A stretch of 64,000 nucleotides of DNA from Guillardia theta CCMP2712 (Eukaryota > Protista > Cryptophyta): assembly GCF_000315625.1 (NCBI RefSeq), contig NW_005434543.1, forward strand, positions 55,445 through 119,444. Reading direction: 5' to 3'. Below are positions 30,901 through 61,039 of the stretch, one piece after another (position 1 is the stretch's first letter; each line of letters starts with the position of its first letter). The translations under genes were made by a program, and so were the position numbers. Under the pieces are notes generated by a model. That model ran no database searches. It was not told where the DNA came from and saw nothing but the letters and a program-made list of their open reading frames with translations.

Positions 30901-30989
30901 ACATTTCAGGTTGAAATAAGCGTCGCATGCTGATATATGGAAGGTGATTCGCATAGCGCTGCTGAATATTGGTAGAACAAAGCATAGTG

Positions 30990-33515: not shown

Positions 33516-33560
<45 letters not shown>

Positions 33561-40326: not shown

Positions 40327-40395
40327 TCGTTTCAAACATTAGTTTATTAGCCAAATAATTCTAAATCCTCATACCTATCGGTTTTGTTTTCATGT

Positions 40396-42675: not shown

Positions 42676-42717
42676 GATCAATTCTTCTTCTTTTCTTCAA
42701 AGGGACGGGTTATACGG

Positions 42718-42742
42718 TTTATATGGTAATGTAGATATAAAA
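42718..42742. promoter_or_regulatory. back-to-back TATA boxes of a compact divergent promoter
   Basis: TTTATA at 42718-42723 (TATAAA on minus) and TATAAAA at 42736-42742, inside the 95-bp gap between ATGs at 42675 (-) and 42771 (+). Confidence 0.5.
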
Positions 42743-42770
42743 CTCAATGCTCGTGGATACATTATAGAAT

Positions 42771-43151
42771 ATGAGCCGTGTTGAAAGACTAAGGAGTAGC
42801 GTGGGCAAGGTCTGTAATGTAGAGAAGTTCGGTGGCAAGTGCTGTGTGAGCAAGAATGACACCGTTGTACTTTACGATTACGATGAATGGAACGATAGCA
42901 TGCAGGATAAAATCAAGACTAAATTCCCAAACGTCAGCATCACTTGCACCAATGATAAGGCGAGCCTTTCGGGGTTAGTGATTGTATTTGTGTTGACTGA
43001 TTCTGATAGTGATGTCACTTACTATGTGCTTTGGCACGTTTTTGTGAACCTCATGGTAGCTTTTTGTATATACTACGTCCTGATGAGCAAGGTATGCCAA
43101 TGTGGTTGTTCAAGTCTTCATAGCAACCTTCTAATGTGCGACCGGATCTAG
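42771..43151 (+). CDS. hypothetical protein with a C-terminal transmembrane helix
   Basis: 126-aa ORF with hydrophobic YYVLWHVFVNLMVAFCIYYVLM. AATAAA at 43194-43199. Confidence 0.7.
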   Translation: MSRVERLRSSVGKVCNVEKFGGKCCVSKNDTVVLYDYDEWNDSMQDKIKTKFPNVSITCTNDKASLSGLVIVFVLTDSDSDVTYYVLWHVFVNLMVAFCIYYVLMSKVCQCGCSSLHSNLLMCDRI

Positions 43152-43289
43152 CCATAATTTTTCAAAGCAGTTCACATATAAATGAGGAAGTGAAATAAAC
43201 AATATCAAAGAAACAATTGTCAACGCAGCAAGGAATACCAACAATATTTAACAGACTTTTTATCGTTTCGATTCTATTATTGACAAGAG

Positions 43290-45011
43290 ATGAACCAACA
43301 TAACGTAAATTACACATACCATCCCAGGAATGCTGGGTTGCAGGAGCTGGTTGCACCCCAGAGCAATGCTCCTATCCCTCTAGACAAGACTGCTATAGAG
43401 AAGTTGCAGCACCTAAACAAGATCTACAATGAAGGTAAGTATACCAGGATCTGGTTTATTATCAGCTTCTTCATCCACGCTATCCTTTCTTTCCTTCTTC
43501 TGGTTTTAACCCTGTACGGGATGGGGAGGAATGTAGGAAATTTCCCTATCCTACGGACTTCCTTCACGTCCAAATACGGCGATCTTCCCGACACCATCCA
43601 CCCTACCCTTTATGGTATCACCACAATCCTTACTGATCAGGACAAGGGGTTCATGCCAGTGCCAACAGTCCCGGTCAGCTTCCAGGACGTTCCCATCACG
43701 GACGACAGGCGGAAGGACAGCTACTACTACTGTGTCGATGGAACATTGAACTATACCTCTGCCATTGGTGGGACTATCATGGACCAGACCAGAGCCAAGG
43801 GGATCTGCATGGTTGAGCGTTACTCTGCCGTTGCAAATTATGAGAATCATGAATCGAGCATGACATTCTCCTCTGCATGGAGTCCCATGTTTATGATCAC
43901 CGTCTTGATGTGGATCAGCACCTCCTGGCAGCTTCTCTATGTCGACTTCAAGCAGCTCGGTGGTGTGGATAAGAGGTACTACTATGCCGCCTGGCACATC
44001 CTCACCCTCTTTGGCATCATGGTCTTCTCTTATGTCAGGACGAATGATCGGATGGTTCCTAGGAATAACATCATGTTTGCCATTGCTATCTTGGTCTTTA
44101 GCATCATTCAACAGATCTACATCATGAACCGCCATGGAGATATCATCAAGATCTCCGATACTGAGTACCACCGCCAGGATGAGATCAACTTCATCCGCAA
44201 GATGTACCAGGCCATCGAAAACAATGCGAATAGTAACAGGGTGAAGAAGATCTTTACAGAGAAGCAGCTAGGATTCATCGTCCTTCTCTCCGATTGGCTC
44301 TTGCTCCCCCTGTTCTGTATCAGCATCTTCTCTCTTCTCTCTAACAACGTGCTAGAATGGGTCTTCCAGGCCACCTACGTTAGGTACCAATTGATCATCT
44401 TGGGTTTTGTTCTTATTCAACAGCTCAAGGTGGTAGAACAGGTCACTAACATGAAGATGAAGATGTTTAAGAGTTCTAAGAACAGGGCATTGGCTTATGA
44501 ATTCCATCCAAGGCTTGTGATCCTCTTTGCCATCCTCTTTGCCGCTATCAATGAGATCGTGAGCATGACCGATACCTGGACCTCACAGCACGATCACACG
44601 GTGACCCGGACATATTCAAGCTTATACCTTGCCACCATCGTCCTCTACTTCGCCACCGTATCTTATTGCGTTTTCCGCAGGATTGGATCGACTGGTGGGA
44701 CTGTGAGTGAAGATGGTAACGTCTATGGCGTTACAAGGCAGGACGACAAGAGCGGTACAATGATCAACATGGCATCATCCTTTTTGCGGATCGTCTTTGT
44801 AGGCATCCTTCTTGCATATCTTTTCAATGACTATAACAAGTACTCGTGCTGGTCGAGCAGCAAGAGCAAGAGCCTATTCTGTGGTCATGCCAATGCTCTG
44901 AATAATCTCAACAATAGGGATTTCTTGAAGCCAATCGCCATTACGAGTGGAAACGCTACCAGTGTCTACGAGACGCTTTTTAGCTCCATCACCTATGCAC
45001 CCATGATTTAG
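43290..45011 (+). CDS. multi-pass membrane protein, tentatively heliorhodopsin-like (retinal Lys position apparently Arg)
   Basis: 573 aa with about 9 hydrophobic segments. The first helix has a His (IISFFIHAILS), followed by a long Cys-containing loop. The last helix has S-S-F-L-R where heliorhodopsins have S-x-x-x-K. The CDS is well supported, the family call is weak. Confidence 0.6.
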   Translation: MNQHNVNYTYHPRNAGLQELVAPQSNAPIPLDKTAIEKLQHLNKIYNEGKYTRIWFIISFFIHAILSFLLLVLTLYGMGRNVGNFPILRTSFTSKYGDLPDTIHPTLYGITTILTDQDKGFMPVPTVPVSFQDVPITDDRRKDSYYYCVDGTLNYTSAIGGTIMDQTRAKGICMVERYSAVANYENHESSMTFSSAWSPMFMITVLMWISTSWQLLYVDFKQLGGVDKRYYYAAWHILTLFGIMVFSYVRTNDRMVPRNNIMFAIAILVFSIIQQIYIMNRHGDIIKISDTEYHRQDEINFIRKMYQAIENNANSNRVKKIFTEKQLGFIVLLSDWLLLPLFCISIFSLLSNNVLEWVFQATYVRYQLIILGFVLIQQLKVVEQVTNMKMKMFKSSKNRALAYEFHPRLVILFAILFAAINEIVSMTDTWTSQHDHTVTRTYSSLYLATIVLYFATVSYCVFRRIGSTGGTVSEDGNVYGVTRQDDKSGTMINMASSFLRIVFVGILLAYLFNDYNKYSCWSSSKSKSLFCGHANALNNLNNRDFLKPIAITSGNATSVYETLFSSITYAPMI

Positions 45012-45035
45012 ATTTATAAAGGTTTTATTAAATCT

Positions 45036-45356
45036 TTAAAGTGGATATAGCAATTCATAGTCTAATTCACTGTCCTTGCACTTCTTTACATACCGGCTTA
45101 AGGTGATAAGGTATAAGCTGTATAGGTAGATGGTTGATGTGATGACATAGAGTGAGGTGCAAGCCGGGGACTTGGTAGCGTCCTGGCTAGACTTTTGTAG
45201 GTGGTACTGTATAGTGTTTGCTTCGTATCGATAGTTGATAGGGTAGGGCCTGGAGATCGCATCTGCAATCTCTATGGTCAGGTTGTCGGGAATGTATAGA
45301 GTGATGAGCACTGTAAGGGTAAAGACTGTCACGAAAAGGATGGCACTGATTTTCAT
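45036..45356 (-). CDS. small membrane protein with two hydrophobic segments
   Basis: The ATG at 45356 (MKISAILFVTVFTLTVLITLYI) avoids overlap with the upstream gene. Minus-strand AATAAA at 45024-45029. Confidence 0.6.
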   Translation of the reverse strand: MKISAILFVTVFTLTVLITLYIPDNLTIEIADAISRPYPINYRYEANTIQYHLQKSSQDATKSPACTSLYVITSTIYLYSLYLITLSRYVKKCKDSELDYELLYPL

Positions 45357-45360
45357 CGCC

Positions 45361-45876
45361 TTAGTGTTTCTTCCATGTCTTCTGCTCAGGTGCGTTGAAA
45401 TACGGTAGCATTGTGAGTTCATACGTCAACTTGGTGTCCATCATGCAATATTCCTCAAGCTCCTTCAACCTGCCCTCCTTCGCCATCTTGACCGCCTCAT
45501 AACCATTCGAAGTCTTGGTCTTGAGATTGTTACACATCAACGCGCTATCCAACGAGAATGTATGGTTGTGGAGTGACTTGTACTTGTGAAATATATCTAC
45601 TGTCTTTAACAGCCACATCGCAACCCTGTCCGGATCCGCCTTGAATTGCACCTGTACAAATGGTATGTCGAACTGTATCCCGTTGAATGTGCATATCTGA
45701 TCCGCGTCATCCAACTCTCTCATGAACTCTTCCGCTCTCTCCCTCTTTTCCTTGAAGTCACCGACAGTGAAATGGAAACTTTTCTCTTTCCCTATGGCAG
45801 GGTCATAGATGCATATGCAGGTGATTGAATCTTTGTAAAAGTTTAATCCAGTCGTTTCTATATCAAAGGCGAGCAT
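45361..45876 (-). CDS. stand-alone DEDDy 3'-5' exonuclease (RNase H-like fold)
   Basis: ExoI FDIETTGL, ExoII TFNGIQFDIPF, ExoIII EEYCMMD. Confidence 0.85.
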   Translation of the reverse strand: MLAFDIETTGLNFYKDSITCICIYDPAIGKEKSFHFTVGDFKEKRERAEEFMRELDDADQICTFNGIQFDIPFVQVQFKADPDRVAMWLLKTVDIFHKYKSLHNHTFSLDSALMCNNLKTKTSNGYEAVKMAKEGRLKELEEYCMMDTKLTYELTMLPYFNAPEQKTWKKH

Positions 45877-45936
45877 ATCCCCTTCGATACGCTTATGGGT
45901 CTGGCCCGACTATGAAATGATCGATTCTAAAAAGTT

Positions 45937-46236
45937 TTATGAACACCAAGACCTGCAGGTGCGCTTGACGATGGCGTGGACTGAGTTGTGCTTGCTGTTG
46001 CTATTATCATGAAGGCTGCTAGTTGGATCGATGACAGTCCCTAGTCTTTGCGTGCATACAAGGATGTAATCGTTTAGCTCCTGCCTTTTTCTTGTCTGTA
46101 TAATCTGCAGATGGTCCGTTGCGGACGAGCTCTGTATCATGGATTCTTTTTGTAAGAGGCTCTTGAGTGCGGGTGAGGTAATAACGTGATTTTGATTATG
46201 TTTAGAGGATGAGCTGCCATTATTTGAGGATTGCAT
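45937..46236 (-). CDS. hypothetical protein
   Basis: 99-aa ORF that fills the gap between its neighbours without overlap. Confidence 0.5.
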   Translation of the reverse strand: MQSSNNGSSSSKHNQNHVITSPALKSLLQKESMIQSSSATDHLQIIQTRKRQELNDYILVCTQRLGTVIDPTSSLHDNSNSKHNSVHAIVKRTCRSWCS

Positions 46237-46260
46237 TTTTGATCGTGTTAAAACAAAGAA

Positions 46261-46896
46261 ATGAAATCAATACTATTTCGAACCATTTTTTTAAGTGTGT
46301 GCTTATCCATTGCTCTAGCGAATGATATATTGACCGATCACGAAAGTCTGTTCGTTTCTAAGATGCAGGAGGTCTTTATGATAAAGGATGGAAGCATTAT
46401 AGTAGACCCTAAAGATACGACCATTGTCTCTGCACTCCGAAAGGAGATTCGATCTATAATCACAAATTACACCGGGGTGAGCTCGTTGGATGACTTCCGG
46501 AACTCTAGCATAGTCAATGACGATGACATCGTCCTGGTGATCATGCTCGCTGTAATGGGAAACTTCCACAGAAGGAGTGTAACGAATGCTGATGTCTATG
46601 ACGACGTACAGATCGTCTTTGACCCGTTGGACGGCAAGTTTGTCATACTCCAAAACCTAAGGGATACAGAGATGACGGTCTTCAAGGCACTCTTGGTAGT
46701 GTCAGTGGCAGGGCTCCTTCTGATCTTCATGATGGACAAAGACGATAAGAAGAATAGGATTGAAGAAGAGGAGAGGAGGAGGCAAGAAGAGGAAAAGTTG
46801 CGGCAAACGAACGTGAACCTAGAAGCTTTATTCGGCCGAGCAGTGACACCATTGCATACAAATCAAGGAATACATACAATCAAGTTTAGGAAATGA
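46261..46896 (+). CDS. type I membrane protein (signal peptide, TM, charged tail)
   Basis: Signal MKSILFRTIFLSVCLSIALA, TM ALLVVSVAGLLLIFMM, and N-glycosylation sequons NYT and NSS. Confidence 0.75.
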   Translation: MKSILFRTIFLSVCLSIALANDILTDHESLFVSKMQEVFMIKDGSIIVDPKDTTIVSALRKEIRSIITNYTGVSSLDDFRNSSIVNDDDIVLVIMLAVMGNFHRRSVTNADVYDDVQIVFDPLDGKFVILQNLRDTEMTVFKALLVVSVAGLLLIFMMDKDDKKNRIEEEERRRQEEEKLRQTNVNLEALFGRAVTPLHTNQGIHTIKFRK

Positions 46897-46898
46897 TT

Positions 46899-47210
46899 TT
46901 AATCCTTGTCTTGCTTCTTAATGCTGTAGCCGTAAGCATCTTTGATCTCAAAGACTTCAGTGTAGAACCCGCTATCTATCATGAAGTTCAACGACTTTAG
47001 GGAAGATATAACCTTCTCGTTTTCTCTCTGTACTTCACATTTACGGGTGAAATTTGGACAGTGGATGATCTTGTTCAGACATTGCCGCTCGTCCTTGCTG
47101 TAACAGACATTCTCTCGGAGGATTGACGCTATCCCCTTGATGACTATATGGCACGATCTTACCGGGAACGGGTGTAGTACGAATAGCAGCAGTATTATTT
47201 TTGAGTACAT
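46899..47210 (-). CDS. small secreted Cys-containing protein
   Basis: Signal-like MYSKIILLLFVLHPFPVRS and 5 Cys. Converges on the neighbouring stop with a 2-bp gap. Confidence 0.6.
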   Translation of the reverse strand: MYSKIILLLFVLHPFPVRSCHIVIKGIASILRENVCYSKDERQCLNKIIHCPNFTRKCEVQRENEKVISSLKSLNFMIDSGFYTEVFEIKDAYGYSIKKQDKD

Positions 47211-47319
47211 TTCGAATACAACTTGTCACGGACCTTGGAGTTAAGACCTTGAACACAAATCTCTTCAAATCACTCCCCAGTTTCATTGTTTTTCAACCAA
47301 AAAAGGAAAATTACGTCTT

Positions 47320-47574
47320 ATGGGGGTGGGATTTGACGCACTTATCCTGGACGTACAGGAGAGTTCAAACCTCGTCATCGTCTGCCCATTGGAGGAGGCG
47401 TCGGTGATTTGCATAGAGACAGACAAGAACTTGCGCTTTCTATCTAAGCTCTCTCCATATACCCTGGTCCGTATAGAGGGTACAAGTTGGAACCTACAGA
47501 AGAAGAGGTTCGTGGGTGGAGATATCAATATCTTCAACGTCGATTACAGTCATGGCTTTGCAGTGGAGTGTTAG
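47320..47574 (+). CDS. small beta-rich hypothetical protein
   Basis: 84-aa ORF with a short overlap onto the next ATG. Confidence 0.5.
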   Translation: MGVGFDALILDVQESSNLVIVCPLEEASVICIETDKNLRFLSKLSPYTLVRIEGTSWNLQKKRFVGGDINIFNVDYSHGFAVEC

Positions 47575-48472
47575 GATCAAGTACAGCCCAACGGAGTCCA
47601 TTTACAGAACCGTTTCCGCCGAGCTCGATACATGTGGAACATGTGATGTCTTTATTGTGGGCATGGATAAAGCAGTTTGGGTCAAAGACTGCACCCTGAA
47701 TAAGGAGAACAGTGGGTTTTCATTTGAAACCATTGCATCCAAAGACATAAAGCAATTCAAGAAAAACAATGCATGCATAGAATTGATTAATATGCCATTA
47801 TTATGCATGTCATCGAATCCATTGGTTGTCTCCCTTTATGAGGGTGATCTTTATGGTTTTTATCCAGAACAGGGCATTAAGATCTTCAATGTATGCGGGA
47901 AGATCGTCACTATGAAAAGGTGTGATGTGGATGACATATTCAAAAAGGAATACACACCCTGTTTGATCAACAAGCATAGGCAAGTAGTGAGTCTATCACA
48001 TTTGCATGGGAATCTTATGTTCAAGCGACATGGACACTTTCTACTTTTCAAGGGGTTCAAATCGTTGAATGACTTCAATCATGTCATACATGAAGTCTTG
48101 AAAGAAGATATACTGGATAGTAGCGAGGCCCTAATTGATATGCTGTCTGTAAAATGCAACCTTGGCAAGTACATTGGAGTTTCGCATGATTGCCACCTGC
48201 AGAAGCAAATCGAGAAAAAATATAGAGAGTGTGTTTATTTCATACCAAGGACGGACGAGCAGAACAACTGTCTCTACTTCAAGATAACTGATCTGAGGAG
48301 AATGACAGGCAAGTTCTCCTTCAGGCACAAAATACACTGTTGCATCAGCAGAAAAGGCTGTTTCATCGCTAGGATCATATGGAACGGAAAGATAATCTGG
48401 GAAGAGAAAGCACATAATGAGCTGATTGAGATTGTAGGCCACTTGAAAGATCTGTTCAATGAACTCATATGA
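47552..48472 (+). CDS. divergent TATA-binding-protein-like protein
   Basis: GNLMFKRHGHFLLFKGFKSLNDFNHVIHEV resembles the TBP TALIFxSGKMVxTGAKSEDD helix. IDMLSVKCNLGKYI resembles IQNIVxSCDxxFPI. HCCISRKGCF resembles the second-repeat LIFxSGK. First ATG at 47552, AATAAA at 48520-48525. Confidence 0.5.
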   Translation: MALQWSVRIKYSPTESIYRTVSAELDTCGTCDVFIVGMDKAVWVKDCTLNKENSGFSFETIASKDIKQFKKNNACIELINMPLLCMSSNPLVVSLYEGDLYGFYPEQGIKIFNVCGKIVTMKRCDVDDIFKKEYTPCLINKHRQVVSLSHLHGNLMFKRHGHFLLFKGFKSLNDFNHVIHEVLKEDILDSSEALIDMLSVKCNLGKYIGVSHDCHLQKQIEKKYRECVYFIPRTDEQNNCLYFKITDLRRMTGKFSFRHKIHCCISRKGCFIARIIWNGKIIWEEKAHNELIEIVGHLKDLFNELI

Positions 48473-48539
48473 ATCAGTGTACAGAGTTATTTAATTGTAT
48501 ATCAATCCAATTGCAAGATAATAAAAGCAAACGATTGAA

Positions 48540-49952
48540 ATGATACTTCCTAAACTTTTTTATCAAGAGATGAAGAAGATCAAGAGGGTAGAGAAGGATC
48601 CTATCAGTTCAAAGAAATCAAGGGACAGCGTTAAGATACTCAAGTCTAACAAACAGTATGATAAGGATGACATAATCAGGCCAAGGTTTAGAAAACTGAA
48701 CACACCCATGGGCCCTTCGAGATTCGTACCTCTCTCTACTCTCAGAGAGATAGAACTAGAGGATGAAAGCTTGCCCGAACCCAGTAAGGAGTATGTGGAC
48801 TACGAGACCTTGAAACCCTCCAATATCGAGGAGCTCAAGAATGAAGTCAGTGATCTCGTTGAAGAGAACAGCCTCACTTTAGAAGAAGCTGCTGATCTTC
48901 TAGACAAGGCCTATGGGCCAGAGAGGATCTTTGTATGGTTCGTCAAAATCATCATTTTCAACGCATTCATGCTAGGAACACTGGGGTTTGCCATGAGCTT
49001 CCCGAATACCAATTCATCCTTGCCATCCTTTACACTCTGGTCGGCCTGCACCGTTGGGTTTGCATCATTCGTATCCCTGTTTGGTTGTATATTCATTGCC
49101 TTTTCAAGGAGAGTGGTAGAGCTACGTGTGGGTACATTCATGCACGCCATTAACTCGGGTCTTTCCATGTTAACTTCCGTTTCAGTACTTTGGTTCTTTT
49201 ACGGTCTCTTGACGATAGGGAAGAAGGATAGCCCCACAATCATAAACAACCTTTCCAAGCTCTTATGGCCCTTGACGTTTCCTCTGCAAGGCGCACCCTT
49301 CGTGATCGGTGCGTCGTTTATTATCGTCCTCTTCCTCCTCTTCCTTGTGACGTCATACAAGTCCACGCCAGTGAACGGTTCGAATCGAATCTTCATCAAT
49401 CATGGATTCCTTTTCATGGCATCCTTCATGAAAGCATTTATCCAGATCATGTCGAATCGGGGTTACGTTGTCTGTGACCTGAGGGGAAATCCATGGGCTG
49501 GCAATGCAAACACCATATACAGCCTCTGGAACCGCTCGTATGCTATCTGGATCACCGTCAACTCACTTCTCGCAATATCCTTTCTGATCTCGCTCATCGG
49601 CGACCTTAAACTCGACAAGAGGCTTGGGCCTGTCAATGGGAAGTATTTCCCCTATGCAAGGGTAGTGCACAGTGCATTCATCTCTATTGCATACTTGGGA
49701 TTCATGCTTTTTGATGTTAGGTCGTCACAGGGTACACATGACATCATTCAAGCTAGCACTTCCATAGGTAGGACCATGAAAAAGGAAAAGGCGTTTCATA
49801 CCATCTACAACTTCTGCGTGCTTGGACTGTGTGCATTGACCGCCGTCATGGATATCGATTGGTTCCATCTGGTCATCAACGATAGGAAGAGATCGGGTAT
49901 TGACAAGGATAAATTCCATTCAACGCAGATGGAGTATAAAAAAGAGCAGTAA
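48540..49952 (+). CDS. multi-pass membrane protein with a charged N-terminal domain
   Basis: 470 aa with about 8 hydrophobic segments after residue ~125. AATAAA at 49964-49969. Confidence 0.8.
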   Translation: MILPKLFYQEMKKIKRVEKDPISSKKSRDSVKILKSNKQYDKDDIIRPRFRKLNTPMGPSRFVPLSTLREIELEDESLPEPSKEYVDYETLKPSNIEELKNEVSDLVEENSLTLEEAADLLDKAYGPERIFVWFVKIIIFNAFMLGTLGFAMSFPNTNSSLPSFTLWSACTVGFASFVSLFGCIFIAFSRRVVELRVGTFMHAINSGLSMLTSVSVLWFFYGLLTIGKKDSPTIINNLSKLLWPLTFPLQGAPFVIGASFIIVLFLLFLVTSYKSTPVNGSNRIFINHGFLFMASFMKAFIQIMSNRGYVVCDLRGNPWAGNANTIYSLWNRSYAIWITVNSLLAISFLISLIGDLKLDKRLGPVNGKYFPYARVVHSAFISIAYLGFMLFDVRSSQGTHDIIQASTSIGRTMKKEKAFHTIYNFCVLGLCALTAVMDIDWFHLVINDRKRSGIDKDKFHSTQMEYKKEQ

Positions 49953-50020
49953 ACTCCATGACAAATAAATTTAGAAATCAATAATCAATAACAACCTGAC
50001 AATGAATCAAAACCCAGAAT

Positions 50021-50336
50021 ATGATCTCAAGAAAAAGTAACACTTACTTCAAACCCGATGTCAAGGTAAGCATTGATGTGTATGTATGTGAATCTTATAG
50101 CTTACGTTTATGCTCAGATTGACATCAATAAGAAAATGCATGATTTCTTTCACATCTATTACACCAAATCGCGAGGAAACTGGGTATACCAGGATGGTTG
50201 TTTCTTTATTTCTTTGAGTATCATCGGATACTTCATTTCCTATGCTATCACTTTCGAAGCATACTATCCAGAGATGGAGGTGTTAGCTATCGATTATTAC
50301 CACCATGACTTTCTTGGATTGAAGAGGGACTGGTAG
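50021..50336 (+). CDS. small hypothetical protein with one predicted 52-nt GT-AG intron (50066-50117)
   Basis: ATG at 50021 gives 15 codons, then AAG|GTAAGC...TGCTCAG|ATT rejoins the frame of ORF 50073-50336 in phase 0. AATAAA at 50357-50362. Confidence 0.6.
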
Positions 50337-50366
50337 AGTGTTGATTCTTAAGTTTGAATAAAACTT

Positions 50367-51185
50367 TCAAGAGCATTGACTCATGATCAAGACATCGATG
50401 GGTTCAAACGGTCTTCCACCATTCATCACCCTGCCAAAGACACGGATAGAATCTCCATAGGAGCTGCCATTCATGTAAAAGGGCTTTGGGTAGATGATGT
50501 TCTTCTTGTAAAGGCTCTTTGTCGCCTCATTCTTGTAATTCCCCATTGCATTGCGTTCAAAGAACTCCCTTCTTGTCCTTTCAGCGTCATTGTTCTCGTC
50601 TTGATCCAATGGTTGCAGATTGTTGTTATAGATCCTCTTGCCATCCTTTGAAAATCTCGAATGCTCAAAGTCAAAATACCACTGGAGATAATCACCCGTG
50701 TAACAATGGAAATGGCCATTCATGATCGTCGCCATCCCACATACAAGCACAGAAGCTATGTTGTCCCCATGGTTCATTGTGGCCCAGGCGAGGGCATTCG
50801 CAACACCCTGGAACTGGAACTCGGGTATCAACTGCCTTGCAACAGACTTGGCATGATTATATTCAAGCTGCGTCTCGGATGCATATATGTCCATAATCTC
50901 CTGCTTCAGGTCATCTGTGACTTCACCCAAAGTAGTGATAACGGGTGGATAGGCCTGCCGATTCACCTTGTAAGTCATGCGATTGACGGGATTGAAGGGC
51001 TTTGCAACACAAAGAACCAACTCGTCTTTATGCATGCAATACTTGTACTTATCGAGATGGATCCTGTGGATGAATTCTGGGTTACTGAGGATTTTCAATG
51101 CATCCTCCGACACCCTACATGCAATGATATGCTTGGAAGCAGAATCCACCCTGGTCCCAGTGATCTGGCCTACGCTAGCGTTCAT
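50367..51185 (-). CDS. putative capsid triplex/cement-like protein, paralogue A
   Basis: Motif order DELV..VITTLG..FQGVA..G-x-x-T-I-x-NG..GD-x-x-QW..RVFGRV..G-x-P...DVLI. This resembles beta-tulip decoration/triplex proteins. First ATG at 51185. Confidence 0.55.
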   Translation of the reverse strand: MNASVGQITGTRVDSASKHIIACRVSEDALKILSNPEFIHRIHLDKYKYCMHKDELVLCVAKPFNPVNRMTYKVNRQAYPPVITTLGEVTDDLKQEIMDIYASETQLEYNHAKSVARQLIPEFQFQGVANALAWATMNHGDNIASVLVCGMATIMNGHFHCYTGDYLQWYFDFEHSRFSKDGKRIYNNNLQPLDQDENNDAERTRREFFERNAMGNYKNEATKSLYKKNIIYPKPFYMNGSSYGDSIRVFGRVMNGGRPFEPIDVLIMSQCS

Positions 51186-51263
51186 TTTGCGATACAAATA
51201 TAATGCTTCTTAATGGATTTATTAGGAATAACATAAACCCTTAAATACAAGCCTATTGGCACA

Positions 51264-52133
51264 TCATGGAAGGAAGACATTGGTAATCATGATATCGACC
51301 TGTTCCCAAGGGCCTCCACCATTGATAACCTTCCCAATCACTCTCTGAAGGTCACCGGTGGCGATCTCTAAAATATTGCCCTGTGCGTCCTTCCTTGGCA
51401 TCAAGGACTTCATAAAGAAGACGTTATGCTTCCCCTGGTTGTACTGTTTGTAGGTCCCGTACATGTTCCTCCTTGCAACCGATTCCAATTCAGCCTCGCG
51501 CCTCGCGACAGGGTCTGAGTTGCCCAAATATCTCCTCCTTGCAACCCTCTCTACGGTACCGGGCCTGAGATGGGCTGTGTCCGGGTGCCTGTAACCTTCC
51601 ACATCGAACATAACCTCTTCGAAATCAAAGTACCACTGAACTAGATCACCCGTAAAGGCTGGGAAATTTCCATTGATGATCGTGACCATCCCACCGATCA
51701 GGGCGGATGCAAAGGTGTCACCACTCAAGTCCGATGCCCAGCCTGTCCCGACACTGATGCCCTGGAACCTGAGCTGTCTGGGGAATGGATATTGCGTATC
51801 CTCAGCGACAATGTTATCAATCTCGATATTGTTGTAATAATCTAACAACTCCCTCTTATTCTCTTCTGTCACCTCCTGGCCAAGCGTCGTAATCACGTAG
51901 GGATAGCATACCTTCCTTGTCGTATTGTCTGTCCTGACCGAGCAGTTCATGACGATCTCATCTTTCTGCATAGCATAGAGATACTTTTGTTTCAAAATCT
52001 TTTCCATCGGCTCACCCTGCTCCCGGAAAAAGTCTTGATCCACCCTGCATGCCACAATGTGCTTTGCAGATGAATCAATCCTCGTGCCGGTTCTCTGGCC
52101 GATGCTCACGTTGTTGCTAAAGATGCTAGTCAT
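51264..52133 (-). CDS. putative capsid triplex/cement-like protein, paralogue B
   Basis: Collinear similarity to 50367-51185, e.g. GTRIDSSAKHIVACRV, YPYVITTLG, GGMVTIINGNF..TGDLVQWYFDFE, RVIGKVINGG. Confidence 0.55.
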   Translation of the reverse strand: MTSIFSNNVSIGQRTGTRIDSSAKHIVACRVDQDFFREQGEPMEKILKQKYLYAMQKDEIVMNCSVRTDNTTRKVCYPYVITTLGQEVTEENKRELLDYYNNIEIDNIVAEDTQYPFPRQLRFQGISVGTGWASDLSGDTFASALIGGMVTIINGNFPAFTGDLVQWYFDFEEVMFDVEGYRHPDTAHLRPGTVERVARRRYLGNSDPVARREAELESVARRNMYGTYKQYNQGKHNVFFMKSLMPRKDAQGNILEIATGDLQRVIGKVINGGGPWEQVDIMITNVFLP

Positions 52134-52222
52134 GTGTTATAGTCTTATTCCTATTTTATTTTTATAGTAAGAAGGCCCTGTTAGTTTATATACATTCATA
52201 AGTGGTTCCAATGTAATAAAGT

Positions 52223-53188
52223 CTAACACTTCTTTTTATTCTTGCTGTTATAGACTATCGCAGCGTCCTGTAACCTTCTACCCTTACACTTGTTGCATCT
52301 CCCCTTACAGCACGGGCATGCACTCTTCTTGAGATCGATCGCAAACTTGGACGATGCATTGGCGAGTGAAGAGGGTAACTTGTAAATGTTGAGGAGTGTT
52401 GCATTCCCATAAACAACGGTTGTGATGCTTGTCTTTTTGAAGTAATCTTTGTCGATGCCCAAGTTACTGATAATAGAATCCAAAGGATAGATCTTCAAGG
52501 CATCCATAGTGGTGTAACAACCGTAGGGCGCGCAGAAATGGACGTGGAGTTGGTAGACACTTGGAAGATAATGCACATATGCCATGATGTTATGAGCATT
52601 GTGCTGTGTAACACTCTGGATATAATCAATACAGGTCATCTTCATCTTCCTCAACATGGGTATGTGCCTAGCGTCCAGATCTCTCAATGTCCTCAACTTC
52701 CTATCCTTTACAATACACAGCCAATTGTATACACTTCCATTGTTCATGGCGTGGGTATCGGGAAGGAATACAAACTCGTCTGTCTCTATGAGGACGGAGT
52801 CCTTCTCTCTCGTGCCATCCAATATCTCATAGATCCACTTGTTCTTGTTTGAATTTACTTGCGTTTCGATGTAGTCTTGCATTGGAGCCCCAAAAGCGAT
52901 TGAAGGGGTACAGTTCACAACACACCTCTCATGATAGAATACAATATCCTTGAGTGCAATGTCTTCACTCCTAATTTTTGTTGTCTTGACATGTTGAGAT
53001 TCGGATGATGTATCTGATGAACTCTCGGATAAATTCACTGACGAACTTTCAGATGAATTATCGGATGAATCCAGATCGCTTACACTTATGCGACAGTCAC
53101 TTGTGAATTTAAAGTTTTTGAACACATTATTCATGCCCATGTCCTTTGTCTTGAAATCAATTATATCCTTACTATGATGCATGATCAT
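52223..53188 (-). CDS. DcpS-like m7GpppX diphosphatase (scavenger decapping enzyme, HIT family) with a C-terminal Cys cluster
   Basis: WIYEILDG..E, FVFLPD, LRTLRDL...HIPML and YVHYLPSVYQLHVHF match the DcpS C-terminal domain (human HYLPSYYHLHVHF). First ATG at 53188. Confidence 0.85.
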   Translation of the reverse strand: MIMHHSKDIIDFKTKDMGMNNVFKNFKFTSDCRISVSDLDSSDNSSESSSVNLSESSSDTSSESQHVKTTKIRSEDIALKDIVFYHERCVVNCTPSIAFGAPMQDYIETQVNSNKNKWIYEILDGTREKDSVLIETDEFVFLPDTHAMNNGSVYNWLCIVKDRKLRTLRDLDARHIPMLRKMKMTCIDYIQSVTQHNAHNIMAYVHYLPSVYQLHVHFCAPYGCYTTMDALKIYPLDSIISNLGIDKDYFKKTSITTVVYGNATLLNIYKLPSSLANASSKFAIDLKKSACPCCKGRCNKCKGRRLQDAAIVYNSKNKKKC

Positions 53189-53270
53189 GAATTTATTTGA
53201 AATTTCCTTACAGAAGGTTCTAAAAACCAAAGCTCCCTATATACCCGACTACAGGTATCTATATGACTTT

Positions 53271-53921
53271 TCACTGATCACCACTTCTCTCATCATTTTT
53301 TTCTTCATCTCCAGTCCTAACCTCATCACCGTTCTCATCTCGCATGGCCATAGCAAGGAGATCATCGGAATCATCCAACCCAATCTCACGATAATGGAGC
53401 TCGTTGTCATACTTTAGGAGCTTGGACTGGGCAAGGATGAGCTGAGCTCTGTTGACCTGGATCTTGTGGCTAAGGTCCTTTCTCCTAAGCTTCAGAGCAT
53501 CAGTCTCCACCTTCCTAAAGGGTCTCTTGGGCTTCGGTGCCTTCTTTGGCTTTGGATCCTTGGGCTTCTTCTCTTGTGTCTCAGTCTGGGACTCCTTTTT
53601 GGCCTTCTTTGTTTCTCTCTCCTCGGTCGAATCCTCCTTGCTATTTTTTGATTTCTTGTTCGCAGTAGCAGCCCCCTTACTTGAACCCTTCTCTTGCTTC
53701 GCTTTTGCTTTGCTCTTTGCTTCGCTCTTTGCTTCGCTCTTTGCTGCTTCACCCTTCGCTTCACCCTTCGCTTCGCTCTTTGCTCCCCCCTTGTTTTTTG
53801 GCTTCTTCTCTTTCGAGATTTGCTTGGATTTGATTTCCTCCTCGGTCTCTTCAACTTCTTCTTCCTCCTCCTCCACTTCTTCATCCATCCCCTCCATCAA
53901 GTCACGAATACGGTTATCCAT
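53271..53921 (-). CDS. Lys/Glu-rich low-complexity protein with a C-terminal coiled coil; possibly DNA-binding
   Basis: Acidic N-terminus, AKSE/AKGE repeats, KKPKDPKPKKAPKPKRPFRK. First ATG at 53921. Confidence 0.7.
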   Translation of the reverse strand: MDNRIRDLMEGMDEEVEEEEEEVEETEEEIKSKQISKEKKPKNKGGAKSEAKGEAKGEAAKSEAKSEAKSKAKAKQEKGSSKGAATANKKSKNSKEDSTEERETKKAKKESQTETQEKKPKDPKPKKAPKPKRPFRKVETDALKLRRKDLSHKIQVNRAQLILAQSKLLKYDNELHYREIGLDDSDDLLAMAMRDENGDEVRTGDEEKNDERSGDQ

Positions 53922-53967
53922 ACTGTCCTCTTGATTCAAGATAGAGCTTGTTGCTGAAATTCCTGCA

Positions 53968-54963
53968 ATGGAAATCGATCAATGCAAGAAGATGGACATA
54001 ATATGGGACTGCATGGGTTGGATACAAATGAATGTCGAATGGGGTAGGGTGGTACCGATCATATCGTCGTTTGCAGTTGCAGTCCTAGTGAGACTCTCAA
54101 TATATTATGTCGAAAGAATCAAAAAAATGGGTTTAAAAACAGCCTTTCGAACAGGTTTGAACGGATGGTTGTATCCAAAAAAAAAGAACCCTGCCCATGA
54201 TGTCAAAATCAACCCTTATTTTTTAATATTGAAAAAAAGGAGAGAGATGAAATTACCCTTACAGAAGAGCAACTATGTATTTCAGTTCATGGTTGAGATG
54301 GATCGGTTGAAACAAAAAGAACGCATCATGAAGGAACTATACAATATAGATGAAGAGAAGGAAAATAATAAGGATTGCATAATCCAAGATGAGCAATTCT
54401 ACGAATCACAGCTATTGTACGAGAATGGTGCATTCATGTGCACGCCTGCATGCCTCCTCTTCTCTACAGCAGTAGTAGGAATGGATGTGTGTTCATGCCC
54501 ACCGACCAAAAGCCAGATGAACTGCATCATGACATCGGCATCAAAAATCCAATCATTACTTCTGTCCAAGGACGATAGAAATCACATGTTCTCCATCCGT
54601 GACGTCATCAACCACGTCAAGATACCCGATACCTATCAGAGGGTGGAGATCGTGGGATCTATAGCTAGGTTGCCAGAAGACTTCATCACAAACTTCGAGG
54701 ACGACAACGAGCGACGACAATGCATCATGGATCTGCATGGAGCCGTTATGGCACTTAGGAACAACACGGCACTCGTCATAACACTGAAAAGAAACGCGCA
54801 CACAGTGGCACTCTACAGAAAATCGGCAAAGAAACACTATTACTTCGATCCACTCATTGCGACAGTGAAGGATGTTGGTGATTCAAGCATGGCACTGTTT
54901 GAGGTGTTCAAGATCGCCAGGATGGCAGAGGAATTCACTGGCCTTATCATATCAAAAGAATAA
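53968..54963 (+). CDS. papain-like cysteine protease (putative deubiquitinase/deconjugase) with an N-terminal TM segment
   Basis: SQLLYENGAFMCTPAC gives a candidate oxyanion Gln and catalytic Cys. AHTVALYR...YYFDP gives His and Asp. Confidence 0.55.
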   Translation: MEIDQCKKMDIIWDCMGWIQMNVEWGRVVPIISSFAVAVLVRLSIYYVERIKKMGLKTAFRTGLNGWLYPKKKNPAHDVKINPYFLILKKRREMKLPLQKSNYVFQFMVEMDRLKQKERIMKELYNIDEEKENNKDCIIQDEQFYESQLLYENGAFMCTPACLLFSTAVVGMDVCSCPPTKSQMNCIMTSASKIQSLLLSKDDRNHMFSIRDVINHVKIPDTYQRVEIVGSIARLPEDFITNFEDDNERRQCIMDLHGAVMALRNNTALVITLKRNAHTVALYRKSAKKHYYFDPLIATVKDVGDSSMALFEVFKIARMAEEFTGLIISKE

Positions 54964-54981
54964 CAACGATTTATTCACATC

Positions 54982-56391
54982 TTAATAAACAATGAAACAA
55001 TGAGATTTCAAACTCCATACATTCCCAAGCCCAAGATCAAGTTCCTTCTGAAGGTAACTAGAAGCATTGGCATCCCCAACCTTGTGGCTGAAGTTGAACT
55101 TCATATCATACTTTGAGTTGATGCTCCCAATCTCATAATTCCCCCTAGAGATGTTCTTGAACATGTCACCCTCGATACACTTGATCTTCTGTGACATTGT
55201 CTGCAACGCCTTGTCAATGAAACGGTTGGAAAGCTTCCGCTCCTCTTCCGTCATCTCGGTCTCCAACGCCTTCTGATACTCCCTGAGCAACGATGCGCTC
55301 TTGATCCACTTACCCTTCTGCTGAGCGGTGAGCTTCTTCGCAGATTCCGTCATCTTGCTGTCCGGTCTCATCTTCAAGACACCCTTATAGACCTGGGACC
55401 GGATGTGTGTATTGCAAACATCTCCAAGCGCCTCGACCACCTTGGGGGCATGCATCCTGACCAACTCATAACGGAAGCTGCCATGGAGCTTGTGGAACAT
55501 TTCAGTAGGAACGCTCAAAAAGACAGAATAAAGGTTGCTATCGTCTTCCACATCTTTCTTTGATGATGCACCGGCAAGGTTGCCCATATCTACAGAGATC
55601 ACCGCGAGTGAATGGTTGGGCTCGGGGCTGTAAGGCAAATAAAGGTTATCAATCACATAAGTGTCACCCTTCGAGTTCTTTGCGATCATCTTATGCCTTA
55701 CAAGGTCGATCCCCTTCTTCCCAAGCGAACGGCTCCACGACTTGACGTTCTCAATGTGCTGTGACCAATCGAGTTCGGTGCTAGTGCTCATCTTGGCGAT
55801 TGCCTTGGCACTGAGACGGTAGGTTCCATATTGGCTCTTGACATCCCAATCCTTACCCTCACCATTCTTGCTCGTAGCCAATGAATACAGCTTTGTGAAC
55901 ATGGCGCCAGAGATCAAGGTCTCTGGGATCTTGCTCTCGATGTTGACTTCACCCTCGTTTTGAAGGTTGCTGCCCATCTTATTCTTGCCCGACTTTGACC
56001 AATCTTCCTTGATCTTGGAGATATGGTCGATGACGGCGTTCTTGAGCTCGTCGAGAGTGTCAAACAATGAATTGTATGGCGTCATGATCTGCTTCAGGTG
56101 CTGCTTGTCGCATGACAGTGACTTTCCACTTGGTGGTGGAAGGGACACCTTCATCTCATTGGACGAGATCATCTTCAAGGGAGTAAGGTTACCATTGCTA
56201 CCCCCAGAATGCACGGTAGATTTGATCAATGTGTGCAGATCTTTGGCCTCGATGATGTTGAAATCATGACCCGTTCCACTCTCAATTACATGGTTCACAG
56301 TCTCACAGATGGATGAGTTCTCAAAGTTCTTGAAGTTTTTATGGATGCTGTCAGTGGCAAACGTTCCAGATGACTGTAGGATGTAGGACAT
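54982..56391 (-). CDS. hypothetical ~469-aa protein
   Basis: Long intact ORF with first ATG at 56391. Minus-strand AATAAA at 54970-54975. Confidence 0.8.
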   Translation of the reverse strand: MSYILQSSGTFATDSIHKNFKNFENSSICETVNHVIESGTGHDFNIIEAKDLHTLIKSTVHSGGSNGNLTPLKMISSNEMKVSLPPPSGKSLSCDKQHLKQIMTPYNSLFDTLDELKNAVIDHISKIKEDWSKSGKNKMGSNLQNEGEVNIESKIPETLISGAMFTKLYSLATSKNGEGKDWDVKSQYGTYRLSAKAIAKMSTSTELDWSQHIENVKSWSRSLGKKGIDLVRHKMIAKNSKGDTYVIDNLYLPYSPEPNHSLAVISVDMGNLAGASSKKDVEDDSNLYSVFLSVPTEMFHKLHGSFRYELVRMHAPKVVEALGDVCNTHIRSQVYKGVLKMRPDSKMTESAKKLTAQQKGKWIKSASLLREYQKALETEMTEEERKLSNRFIDKALQTMSQKIKCIEGDMFKNISRGNYEIGSINSKYDMKFNFSHKVGDANASSYLQKELDLGLGNVWSLKSHCFIVY

Positions 56392-56492
56392 TCTCTTTCT
56401 ACTATTGTTCGATAATTCTTTCACGCCTAGTGTTTGTATACAAAAAAGGATGTTGGTACAGGGACTGCATGTCAATCATGTTAAATACTTTA

Positions 56493-57239
56493 TTAACTTG
56501 CAAGGCGCATAAGGGTTGCCAGCGAAACGATCATAAATGTAAAGCTTGCAAACGCAAGATAGATTGAGCCCCAATCCTTCTTCAGAGCCAAAACCACAGG
56601 CCTGACAGTCATATCTCTAACCAATGTGTCAGCACTCAATACACTCCCATTGCTTTGCATGATATACTCTTGAACACCATCTCTGATCAGGTTTGTAAGC
56701 CTGAGCATGTCGAACCTATCGGATTCGATCATCAACACAACCTCCAATGCAATCACATCGATCCCAACCGCGCCAGACCCACCTATGTTGTAGCCTTCAA
56801 ACCAAGTTGTGTTGGGGAGTCCATAATCATTCAAGTTGTTGCTACTGAAAACTCCCGTCTGCTGCATCCAGCTCGGCAAATTGTACTGGCTAAGGTTGCT
56901 GTGAAGGTTGACGGCAGGGTTGATTTTCATCCGCATTGCCTTTTCATACAACCCCCTAAGACTCTGAATATAGATCCTCCACTCCTCGGCATGTTGCTGA
57001 TTGTGGAACTCTGTCAACGCAACGACGCGATATTCACGAAATGGCCCAAGGACCTTATGGAACGCACCTTCTAGTCGCTCCGATACCTTGGTATCCAACC
57101 ATTTACCCATACTAGGAATAGTCATGTCCCAATCCTTTGGATAGCGATCATAGACCCCGGCATCTTGCATTGTAAGATTGCGATCTACAAACAGATAAAG
57201 ACTGAGCCCCACCACCATACCAAAATCAAAAGGGATCAT
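56493..57239 (-). CDS. membrane protein with N- and C-terminal hydrophobic segments
   Basis: 248 aa. The TAA stop overlaps AATAAA (56489-56494, minus). Confidence 0.75.
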   Translation of the reverse strand: MIPFDFGMVVGLSLYLFVDRNLTMQDAGVYDRYPKDWDMTIPSMGKWLDTKVSERLEGAFHKVLGPFREYRVVALTEFHNQQHAEEWRIYIQSLRGLYEKAMRMKINPAVNLHSNLSQYNLPSWMQQTGVFSSNNLNDYGLPNTTWFEGYNIGGSGAVGIDVIALEVVLMIESDRFDMLRLTNLIRDGVQEYIMQSNGSVLSADTLVRDMTVRPVVLALKKDWGSIYLAFASFTFMIVSLATLMRLAS

Positions 57240-57539
57240 ACACTTAGAACGTGACCGTTTTTTTAAGGAGCCAAATCTCGAGATTTCGAACCCACGAAAG
57301 CAGACTTTTGTCGGGATATAGAGGAACTTTGTCAGGGCCGGCAGGAACTATCGGGGGGCTACCGGGTATGACTGAGAAAGGTTACACCCGACAATCGTCA
57401 TGGGACACCGGGCGGTACCGATCATGTTGTGGTACTAGAAAGTGATAACTGAAAATATAGCTCAACCATGGGTTTCAGTGGGTGATTATTATTATTAGCT
57501 AACCGACACAAAACATAAAAATTTCAAAAATTCTAAGAT

Positions 57540-58159: not shown

Positions 58160-59540
58160 CTAGGCTAGTAGACTACTGGCATTTTTTTTACCTGGGAACT
58201 GCACTGCTAGAGTACCTCCTGCGCCATGGCTCCTCGGGGAGCGTGAGGAGAGATGAGAGTCGGGAGTGCGGGAAGGGTTGGGTCCGGGTGAGAGGAGAGA
58301 CAAGCAGAAGTGAAGGCGGGAGCAGAATGCAGAGAAGAGAGGGAGGAAGGCTGAGAGAAGGTTCTGACCAACATGGGAAGGGAGACTGTGGCTGAACCGC
58401 AACGGGAGGAGGCTCTGCAGGAAAAATAGAGCAGGGGACAAGTGTCTCAAGAGCGATGGGTAAAGGATGTGCAAGCTTCTATCCGCCGTCATGCAGAGCT
58501 CAGAGTTCACGGGCGCATCCAGCCAAAGGTTTTCACAGTTTCGATGCCTTGCTGATAGTTTGTCTTTAGGGTTAGCTGCGACCTGCTACCATCGCAGGGG
58601 TTTGGCTGATCGGACAACGATGATTGAGTGGATTGTGAGTTATGCTTGTTCTCTGTGAAGGAACTTCTCAAATCTCCTGGTTGACATCTGTCAAATCTCT
58701 TCCTGAAGCTTTTCTTGTACAGGTCATCGGTACACTCTGTGTCCTTCCAACGTATCTCCTCATGAGCGAAGGCAGCGGCACGGCGCCATGTCAGGAAGCG
58801 CGCAAGGAGCGCCTGGAGGTGAGCATGAAGCTTTTGTTCCCCTGGTGACACGGAGGCAGTCGGCAAACGCAGCAGACTACACCATCAGCTCCCGCATGGA
58901 GGTTTAACGGACAGGTGGGATCGCAGCTGGGTGTGGGGGGTCCTGCTAGATGTGTGCATCAGTGTAGGTGGCTGACATTTGATCGCTCTGAAATGAGTGC
59001 TGTCCAGCCAAGTAAAATTTACTGTTCGATCAATAATACTAAATAATTTCAAAGATGAGATTTCAGAGCAACCAAGTTTGTCCTTGCGCTTCACTTCGAG
59101 TCTTTCAGCAGTTCACCCCAGAAATCATCCTCTTGCTTAGCTTCAGGCTGCTGCTGCAGGAACAAGGCCGATGTCAAACCACACTCGTACCAGATAATGC
59201 ATGCAAGAGCAAACAACAATATCCGAGCAACGGAATACAGGAAGGAGAAGAAGGCACACCACAAGACATGTGCACGGCAGCAAGAAATGAGCAATGATTG
59301 GCATTCATATGCACTAACCAATTTAGCCTTTGCAGCTCGCTTTGCAGCTCTTTCTGCCTTCTTCTTTGCTGTTTGCAATCATCAGTCTTTCCCCACAGCC
59401 AACAAAAGTTGTGACAACACCTAGAGCTTCTTCTCTTGCCTCAATTCTTGCTTCCTTTCGATTCAACGCTCTGAAGGAACGTCAAGAACAAGAACTTGAA
59501 CACTCCTGCTTCACTCACCGTGTGCGGATTGCACCATAGA
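58160..59540 (-). CDS. possible small multi-exon host hypothetical protein (boundaries approximate)
   Basis: Short exon-like pieces ALNRKEARIEAREEAL, KKKAERAAKRAAKAKL and EAKQEDDFWGELLKDSK separated by ~50-nt GT-AG segments. Confidence 0.35.
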
Positions 59541-59623
59541 CGATGCCAAACGCAAGCGCCCCAGATCTTGCGAACTGAGACAACGTAAATCATGACAATA
59601 CTGCGATGTAGCTGACACAACTA

Positions 59624-59692
59624 ACACATCAACTGGATCAAAATACACACATCAAGTGGATCAAAATACACACATCAACTGGATCAAAATAC
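59624..59692. repeat. minisatellite, 23-bp unit ACACATCAACTGGATCAAAATAC x3
   Basis: Direct tandem copies with one substitution. Confidence 0.9.
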
Positions 59693-61039
59693 ACACACGG
59701 TTTCTGGACAACATCCTATTGTTTCCAACAACTTGGGCATGAGATACTCACAAAGTTAAGAGACTCGGATCCAATAGCCGTGGACATCCTGAGAAAATTA
59801 CTCTTTTCACAGGAGAAGTCCCCAGATAGCAACTCGGTAACTGCACAAGGATCAACGTTAGAAACAGAGCAAAAATTGAGTAATCTGGTTGAAATCATCA
59901 TACATCTAGATGATCACGATCATCACATGAAATAAATTCTTGCATCACGATATAAAAACTCAGATCTGCGGACGCCACTACAAAGTTCAAATTATACTCT
60001 GCCAGGAAACTATATCAAGAATCGCAACTTCTACAAAGTATCCTCATGCTTTTCAAAATAAAAGAGCAACATCAAATCAGCGAAAAATTGACAGCCCTAA
60101 ATCTCAACAAAATGAGGAAAATAAGAAGAACGAAAAATTTGATGTGAAAAATATCATCCATCCTTAGCCAACATTATCCATCGCAAGAGAATTGATTATT
60201 AATCCAAAGACCGCACGCAGTCGAATTCAAGGACACGATCTCCAAAACCATTCCACATTAATTCCAGTAGAGTTCTACATGCTTTCTGATAGAGTGTTGC
60301 TGCTGAGGAGCTCCAATCTCGGATCTTTAGTATTATCTCCAAAACAATCAGGTCTGTTGACCTTGATGTAAAACATGAGGGATTTCGAGTACAAACCCCG
60401 CCCCCTCCCCACCCAATTTGTCAAGATCCGGCAAACATTAGAGCAAGAGAGAACAGTGTACAACAGGTTCCCCCGACCATGATGTCAACATTCCAGCAAA
60501 TGAAACAGAATGAGGAAGATAACATTAGAATCAAACAAGCTCAACAAGCATCTTTGTGAACCCAACAGGTCGTAAGAAACAATTCCATTCCACTGACAAT
60601 GTTACGCAGAACAGAGCTGATCTTGATCGCACAAACTCCTGCAATTTCTTCTGAAACATCGCATATAAACCCATATCTTTGTATCTTCGGATTCTCGCAA
60701 ACGACGGTGACCAAAAAGATGTTTGTGTCGGGATACACTAGTCGACCTTTCGCCCATCCGAGTCGATATCCCTGTTTGCTGTCCTAGAGGAAGTTTTTTT
60801 CAACTTGAAGATGAACTCAAACGTGCCAATATGCATTTCTTGATGGAGAAATCCTGCCGCCGTATCTTCTGACTGTATGAGTCCCCCTCCAAAACTTCGC
60901 CAGGGACGTAGGAGGCAGTCTCCCACAAGATCTTCGTCGGAACTGTCTAGCACATAATATGTGATGCCATATACTCGATCATAGCAGTCAAATGTATGTT
61001 CGAAAGCGTACAACACATCATCTACACTGTTCTACACAT

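Follow-up and report, generated by a model that had tools for sequence, protein, structure and literature searches.

A tandem pair of putative triplex-family capsid genes in an endogenous mirusvirus fragment of Guillardia theta

The locus described here lies in a 64,000-nucleotide (nt) stretch of the Guillardia theta CCMP2712 GenBank scaffold JH993095.1 (hereafter the window, meaning that whole stretch), within a block of about 17 kb that is an endogenous mirusvirus fragment in the nuclear genome of this alga. The scaffold sequence matched the window base for base, and an ORF near the pair was 100% identical to GUITHDRAFT_146690 of this strain. Guillardia theta was already listed among the genomes with mirusvirus capsid genes, in clade E03 (Zhao et al., PMC10827195). 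Two minus-strand open reading frames (ORFs) of the block, at 50367–51197 and 51264–52133, encode a pair of related proteins, which we call paralogues A and B. An original prediction, made from the sequence alone, had described them as a tandem pair of closely related, triplex- or cement-like capsid genes, and had proposed that they might be a duplicated subunit, for example separate genes for the two Tri2 positions, and not the usual Tri1/Tri2 pair of herpesvirus triplexes. In the following, L-numbers are labels of the loci with which the window was compared, and f-numbers are labels of the protein families in this analysis.

Two separate genes arranged head to tail

The pair and the spacer between its members are listed here in strand direction.

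51264–52133, minus strand: paralogue B, the upstream copy; 289 amino acids (aa); putative triplex-family capsid protein
51186–51263, minus strand: spacer between B and A; 78 nt, 30% GC, contains AATAAA
50367–51185, minus strand: paralogue A, the downstream copy; 272 aa from the ATG at 51185; putative triplex-family capsid protein

A and B are two intact, separate genes, head to tail. Along the minus strand, the stop codon of B is followed by the AT-rich spacer and then by A's own ATG. This arrangement was conserved in four loci, the window and the compared loci L009, L010 and L011, the last three having spacers of 78, 68 and 81 nt, respectively. The spacer is predicted to separate two transcription units. 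In the ORF listing, A could be extended to a TTG at 51197 (50367–51197, 276 aa). The ATG at 51185 is common to the A orthologues, including the 89%-identical one of L009, and is most likely the start of A. A-type orthologues were found in L009, L010, L011, L094 and L095, and A is the more conserved copy of the two. The GenBank gene model of this region spans exactly 50367–52133 and splices B to A as one 538-aa protein.

Comparison of the two proteins by BLASTP gave 35% identity and 52% positives over approximately 290 columns (E = 6e-52), and the alignment was collinear from the N-terminal motif to the C-terminus. This bears out the description of A and B as head-to-tail paralogues that align end to end, and all three peptide pairs that had been quoted for it were found in the translations. 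The wording "closely related" was too strong for two proteins that share 35% identity and go back to an ancient duplication.

A 180-aa ORF runs antisense over A (50661–51203, plus strand), and 64 loci have comparable antisense ORFs that group with it. It was rejected as a gene and is regarded as a shadow of the conserved coding strand.

Family membership, duplication history and predicted fold

A word search with B returned 60 homologues, which fell into three tiers. The first tier comprised close orthologues at 69–90% identity. The second, at approximately 42% identity, included four Hanusia phi proteins and one Guillardia theta protein, while the third, at approximately 30–35% identity, came from freshwater and marine metagenomes, on contigs of up to 128 kb. 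Neither A nor B had a Pfam match at E ≤ 0.1 or a PHROG match, and a scan of IMG/VR with the family alignment found no relatives. The family alignment itself contained 21 invariant columns.

The genomic setting of the homologues was also investigated. They are carried on mirusvirus-like contigs of 48–128 kb, and one of the loci (L004), which shares its lake-water sample of origin with the published mirusvirus metagenome-assembled genome (MAG) MIRUS_G_0262, is very probably part of that MAG. In L008, the family gene has heliorhodopsin-like and Herpes_teg_N-like neighbours. A gene of approximately 675 aa that lies two genes upstream agrees in size with the published portal. The A/B family is encoded in Mirusviricota genomes, in the neighbourhood of the virion module. 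In most of about 85 loci, a DcpS-like HIT-family gene lies directly upstream of the family gene, often with a gap of <100 nt. L014 is the only contig in which one in-frame ORF spans both the DcpS-like and the family gene. An apparent 550-aa DcpS–triplex fusion in L085 was rejected as a shadow ORF in another frame of GC-rich DNA.

The protein set of Hanusia phi, which we take to derive from a transcriptome, held four distinct B-type proteins as well as a homologue of f47, a family encoded near the pair in the window (P0012, P0014, P0015, P0016 and P0072). This set suggests that mirusvirus genes were transcribed in the Hanusia phi culture.

Copy number was assessed by a tblastn census of all fetched loci (~85). 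Two full copies were found only in the window, L009, L010 and L011, and one copy was found in approximately 80 other mirusvirus loci. L094 and L095 also carry B then A, and one further contig has two genes of fitting sizes, judged from gene sizes alone. The gene order was B then A in every pair-bearing locus, and the single-copy relatives had the length of one copy of the pair.

A neighbour-joining tree (258 columns, 200 bootstraps) recovered the A-type clade in 200/200 replicates and the B-type clade in 189/200. The two clades joined each other, with all single-copy members excluded, in 139/200. The sister position of A and B, together with the single copy in approximately 80 other loci, gives good support to the prediction of a duplicated subunit in place of a usual Tri1/Tri2 pair. 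When the two copies were compared at synonymous sites, these were saturated (proportion of synonymous differences, pS, 0.75), and the pair is therefore an old paralogy, not a recent copy or a product of gene conversion. Between the window and L009, A gave a proportion of nonsynonymous differences (pN) of 0.066 and a pS of 0.76. The corresponding values for B were 0.132 and 0.68, with a ratio of nonsynonymous to synonymous substitution rates (dN/dS) of ~0.08. Synonymous sites are saturated in this comparison too, and both genes are under strong purifying selection.

Single-copy members have 60 columns with at least 90% conservation; A of the window keeps 43 of these and B keeps 44, and the identity to single-copy members was 0.36 for A and 0.35 for B. 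By segment, the N-terminal motif and the beta core were conserved in both A and B, and the helices at 90–110 and the insert were the most diverged. The conservation of the C-terminal strands was 0.69 in the A clade versus 0.40 in the B clade. The sequences support one tandem duplication, in an ancestor from which a cryptophyte-linked mirusvirus group descends, as the probable origin of the pair. From the two clades, the low pN and the conserved columns, both copies have been kept as working proteins since before this group diversified.

An AlphaFold2 model of B, made with the family alignment, had a predicted local distance difference test score (pLDDT) of 81.3 and a predicted template-modelling score (pTM) of 0.80. 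The model has a beta-rich core, with strands at 122–169 and 238–283, helical segments at 33–53 and 90–110, and a variable insert at 176–236. The N-terminal arm was poorly modelled although it carries the most conserved motif.

Foldseek was used to compare the model with known and predicted structures. In the PDB, 22/32 among the matches listed were herpesvirus capsid entries, with chains of approximately 250–350 residues, and four of the 32 matches listed were phage capsid decoration or fibre-base chains. The Tri1 or Tri2 identity of the matched chains is presumed, and "ORF95-like" is taken to be the alloherpesvirus triplex protein 2. The top PDB match was chain C of the phiCD508 capsid (probability 0.90, template-modelling (TM) score 0.44 on the target). 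In BFVD, the named matches were "Capsid triplex protein 2" (E = 0.0099), two entries named "Capsid triplex subunit 2" and one named "TRI1", and matches to phage structural and DUF2190 proteins reached a probability of up to 0.99. Overall, the phage structural and DUF2190 matches had probabilities of 0.90–0.99 and E-values of 0.003–0.17, and the alignments of the B model to triplex chains had root-mean-square deviations of 7–20 Å. No enzymes appeared in the PDB or BFVD lists, and no confident match of A or B to an unrelated enzyme family was found. With moderate confidence, the model suggests that A and B are triplex/decoration-type capsid proteins with a fold most like that of herpesvirus Tri2. 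A capsid role is suggested by this weak fold match taken together with the published annotation of mirusvirus triplex genes.

Interpretation of the pair

We consider, with a probability of about 0.6, that A and B are a duplicated mirusvirus triplex subunit, present as two specialised versions in the cryptophyte-linked group. The ancestral form would have been a triplex protein of approximately 300 residues with a beta-rich core of the phage-decoration/herpesvirus-triplex kind, and a single tandem duplication of its gene in the ancestor of the group would have given rise to B and A. Both proteins would be made in the virions of that group. There they would join as an A + B heteromer, in the place that two copies of one protein take in other mirusviruses, and the resulting triplex would clamp neighbouring major-capsid-protein capsomers. 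Herpesvirus triplexes are heterotrimers, with one Tri1 and two Tri2, at the three-fold sites of the capsid. Tri2 fills two non-equivalent positions in each triplex, and a duplicated subunit could hard-wire that arrangement; in herpesviruses, one Tri2 gene serves both positions. A more specific proposal, which we make tentatively and at clearly less than even odds, is that the triplex is built from two dedicated paralogues, each either taking one Tri2 position beside a separate partner or joining the other in replacing that partner. If true, this would be the first case among herpesviruses, mirusviruses and tailed phages of triplex asymmetry written into separate genes, and a natural snapshot of a heteromeric capsid clamp evolving from a homomeric decoration protein.

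The pair can be compared with three known systems. Like mirusvirus Triplex 1/2, as these are presented in PMC10132985 and PMC12768974, A and B are mirusvirus-encoded, belong to a virion-gene neighbourhood and are in the size class of approximately 280–350 aa. The family and its conserved neighbours are likewise adjacent or one gene apart, and there are Foldseek targets in common with "Mirus_Triplex2". Unlike mirusvirus Triplex 1/2, A and B are a tandem duplicate, a duplication that the searched passages of those papers do not mention, and a second, unrelated triplex family was not detectable beside them. Herpesvirus Tri2 (VP23; Herpes_V23) and Tri1 (VP19C) are of similar size and provided the best named structural matches of the B model. 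A and B differ from them in having no sequence similarity to them, in TM-scores of 0.2–0.3, and in an algal instead of an animal host. The B model also drew Foldseek matches, at E-values of 0.003–0.06, among phage beta-tulip-type decoration proteins (lambda gpD-like, DUF2190; phi29 gp8.5 base; phiCD508 chain C). Those proteins are single domains of approximately 110–160 aa, half the length of A and B, which have helical segments and a variable insert in addition.

In Gaia et al. 2023 (PMC10132985) and in PMC12768974, mirusviruses are annotated with two triplex genes that either adjoin each other or have a single gene between them, and the latter paper uses the hidden Markov model labels Mirus_Triplex1/2. 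In single-copy loci, the family gene (f0, ~265–354 aa) stands between two conserved, unrelated genes, f2 (~345–425 aa), upstream beyond the DcpS-like gene, and f3 (~450–550 aa), downstream. The size and order of the two genes in MIRUS_G_0001, a 954-nt "Triplex1" followed by a 1611-nt "Triplex2", favour f0 as Triplex1 and f3 as Triplex2, and Triplex1 lengths of approximately 280–348 aa in the 2023 tables also favour Triplex1 for f0. The label Triplex2 is favoured by the published-catalogue "Mirus_Triplex2" label on a stand-alone DcpS gene and by the Tri2-like fold matches. Bufonid herpesvirus A0A384ZV55, a BFVD match in this analysis, is also the best match in the 2025 catalogue for the 349-aa "Mirus_Triplex2" of MIRUS_G_0012. 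The main conclusion is unaffected by the choice of label.

Several points weigh against a duplicated triplex subunit. The best Foldseek E-values were 0.058 in the PDB and 0.0023 in BFVD, with none ≤ 0.001, and TM-scores were approximately 0.2–0.3. The herpesvirus triplex families of Pfam (Herpes_V23, Herpes_VP19C) had no match, even at E ≤ 10 across 45 members, and neither A, B nor the 45-member profile had a sequence match in the PDB (phmmer and profile search). The earlier description of the genes as triplex- or cement-like holds in so far as the best fold matches are herpesvirus triplex and phage decoration proteins, and it is weakened by the E-values, the TM-scores and the unmatched Pfam families. 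Equating the family with the published triplex family is indirect, by way of gene size, gene order and shared Foldseek targets, and between Triplex1 and Triplex2 the evidence for f0 conflicts. A partner triplex subunit of the Tri1 type was not found in the window or related contigs, and locus-derived profiles gave no candidate for the major capsid protein, portal or terminase in the window. The element in the window is a viral fragment, not a whole virus genome, and A and B may do nothing in Guillardia theta itself. Heteromer formation and the positions filled by each copy are our inference.

One copy might have come to serve as the other triplex subunit, in which case the pair would be the whole triplex gene set of the group and the triplex would consist of paralogues throughout. 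We regard this as unlikely, while it is the strongest of the rival explanations. The single-copy family gene is flanked by f2 and f3, one of which is probably the second triplex protein. Both were undetectable in the window, L007, L009, L010 and L011 (hmmsearch --max on six-frame ORFs, E < 1), and A occupies exactly the position that f3 has in other mirusviruses. However, the context amounts to 15–20 kb per relative and the window holds a fragment, and the partner could be elsewhere or too diverged. In addition, A and B are alike in their identity to single-copy members and in their share of conserved columns, because of which neither copy looks remodelled for a new role.

An improbable alternative is that the family is not a capsid family and does something else, perhaps in connection with the DcpS-like HIT enzyme, with generic beta-barrel similarity behind the Foldseek matches. 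All the fold matches are statistically weak, the linkage to the DcpS-like gene is tight and near-universal, extending to the in-frame ORF of L014, and conservation as strong as that of the invariant columns is more enzyme-like than herpesvirus-triplex-like. Yet the match lists consist nearly entirely of herpesvirus and tailed-phage capsid proteins. Published work on mirusvirus virion modules reports two triplex genes in this size range, with stronger fold matches, and Aurantiochytrium virus particles contained both triplex proteins (PMC12606086).

It is very unlikely that the pair is no more than redundant or decaying sequence, left in a dead endogenous element and without functional distinction between its copies. 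Redundancy of the copies would make it an ordinary case of paralogues within an endogenous viral fragment. The viral block of the window is fragmentary (~17 kb), and one gene, at its edge, is truncated; another Guillardia theta locus (L007) keeps a partial family remnant at host-like GC. Both ORFs of the pair are nonetheless intact, the duplication is older than the split of lineages that are now ~42–48% identical, the pair was kept in every related locus with enough flank, and pN is far below pS for A and B. For the virus lineage, this explanation is largely refuted. The least probable of all is that B and A make up one gene that contains a repeat, in the manner of the 538-residue NCBI model of exactly 50367–52133. 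Spliceosomal introns are possible in mirusvirus genes (PMC12768974), but both halves are complete family members, with the conserved N-terminal motif at one end and the conserved C-terminus at the other, and are as long as the single-copy relatives. In all loci, B ends in a stop codon and A starts at a separate ATG; the spacer carries AATAAA, and prokaryote-style gene calls give two genes on six other contigs.

Triplex proteins are the hallmark that ties mirusviruses to herpesviruses, and they raise the question of how symmetric phage decoration trimers gave rise to the asymmetric triplex. Diverged triplex copies that have been kept for a long time provide a natural comparison, with paired orthologues for evolutionary-rate and interface analysis. 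The order of a DcpS-like gene, B and A also offers a simple marker of this mirusvirus group in cryptophyte genomes and in metagenomes.

The surrounding viral block

The block that contains the pair, the further genes identified in it and the nearest host gene on its right side are listed below.

40300–57300, limits approximate, no strand: low-GC, gene-dense, intron-poor block, delimited by GC profile; right half syntenic with L009 and L010
45361–45876, minus strand: RNase H-fold 3'-5' exonuclease gene (family f12); Pfam RNase_H_2 1.1e-15, hmmsearch 2e-79
52223–53230, minus strand: DcpS-like HIT-family gene, directly upstream of B; Pfam DcpS_C 1.5e-21; GenBank model 52223–52882
53271–53939, minus strand: f48, a Lys/Glu-rich 222-aa protein; homologues in L007, L009 and L010
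53968–54963, plus strand: f50, a 331-aa protein; N-terminal hydrophobic helix and invariant Cys, His and Asp blocks
54982–56475, minus strand: f47, a 497-aa protein; the one sizeable neighbour without assignment
56493–57239, minus strand: f49 remnant; one high-scoring segment pair to the C-terminal part of the L009, L010 and L007 proteins
59091–59787: host ATP-synt_E gene, just outside the block on its right side

The GC content of the block was 43.9%, compared to 55.8% in the left flank (window 1–40,000) and 51.1% in the right flank. In the cryptophyte-linked group, a module of f49, f47, f50 (on the opposite strand), f48, DcpS, B and A replaces the standard upstream genes. The ORFs of this module were all intact in the window except f49, truncated at the right edge. 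Elsewhere, the intact f49 gene encodes 531–576 aa; the window keeps the C-terminal ~45% of it, by a single truncation, and this remnant marks the right end of the virus-derived block. The f12 exonuclease family was present in 10 loci including the window, the other nine also being mirusvirus loci. Because this RNase H-fold exonuclease is common to mirusvirus loci, the left half of the low-GC block is also considered viral. The other large ORFs of the left half (761, 573, 470 and 318 aa) had no relatives among the compared loci.

A second GenBank fusion was observed at 54982–57170, where the truncated f49 remnant and f47 are joined into the 649-aa GUITHDRAFT_146690. Both this model and the 538-aa model of the pair probably reflect errors that eukaryotic gene prediction makes on viral DNA with few introns, and the present analysis corrects these two fused gene models of Guillardia theta.

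Two of the module's proteins were considered as candidates for the partner subunit. Protein f50, a positional Tri1 candidate, was rejected on account of its hydrophobic anchor and Cys/His/Asp pattern; its hhalign probability against the triplex profile was 2%. From its motif pattern, f50 looks like a membrane-anchored papain-type cysteine peptidase, possibly deubiquitinase-like; neither Pfam nor the PDB gave a match to it, and a word search returned only 7 homologues. Protein f47, a candidate by size, was not supported. It had 8 close homologues by word search and 23 relatives in a full HMMER search, none of the 23 being linked to f2 or f3, and two remote relatives did not adjoin triplex genes. 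Its AlphaFold2 model, made from 8 sequences, was unusable (pLDDT 40.7). Comparison of the triplex profile, f47, f48, f49 and f50 with f2, f3, f4, f5, f11 and other families by hhalign gave probabilities of <3%.

The viral module occurs a second time in Guillardia theta, in L007 (scaffold JH993134, 2046–10654), with a host-like GC content of 0.575. This copy contained a partial remnant of one triplex-family gene, and an A-type copy was not detectable in it. The module of L007 appears to be an older, decayed insertion.

Outside the block, the window contains a 1935-aa ORF with ankyrin repeats and EF-hands at 8939–14746 (plus strand) and a run of long minus-strand ORFs (425–839 aa) at 27531–36604, in DNA of 56–62% GC. 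The three largest ORFs of this run (636–839 aa) had no Pfam match. The ankyrin-repeat ORF and the run may represent host genes, older viral insertions or GC-driven shadow ORFs.

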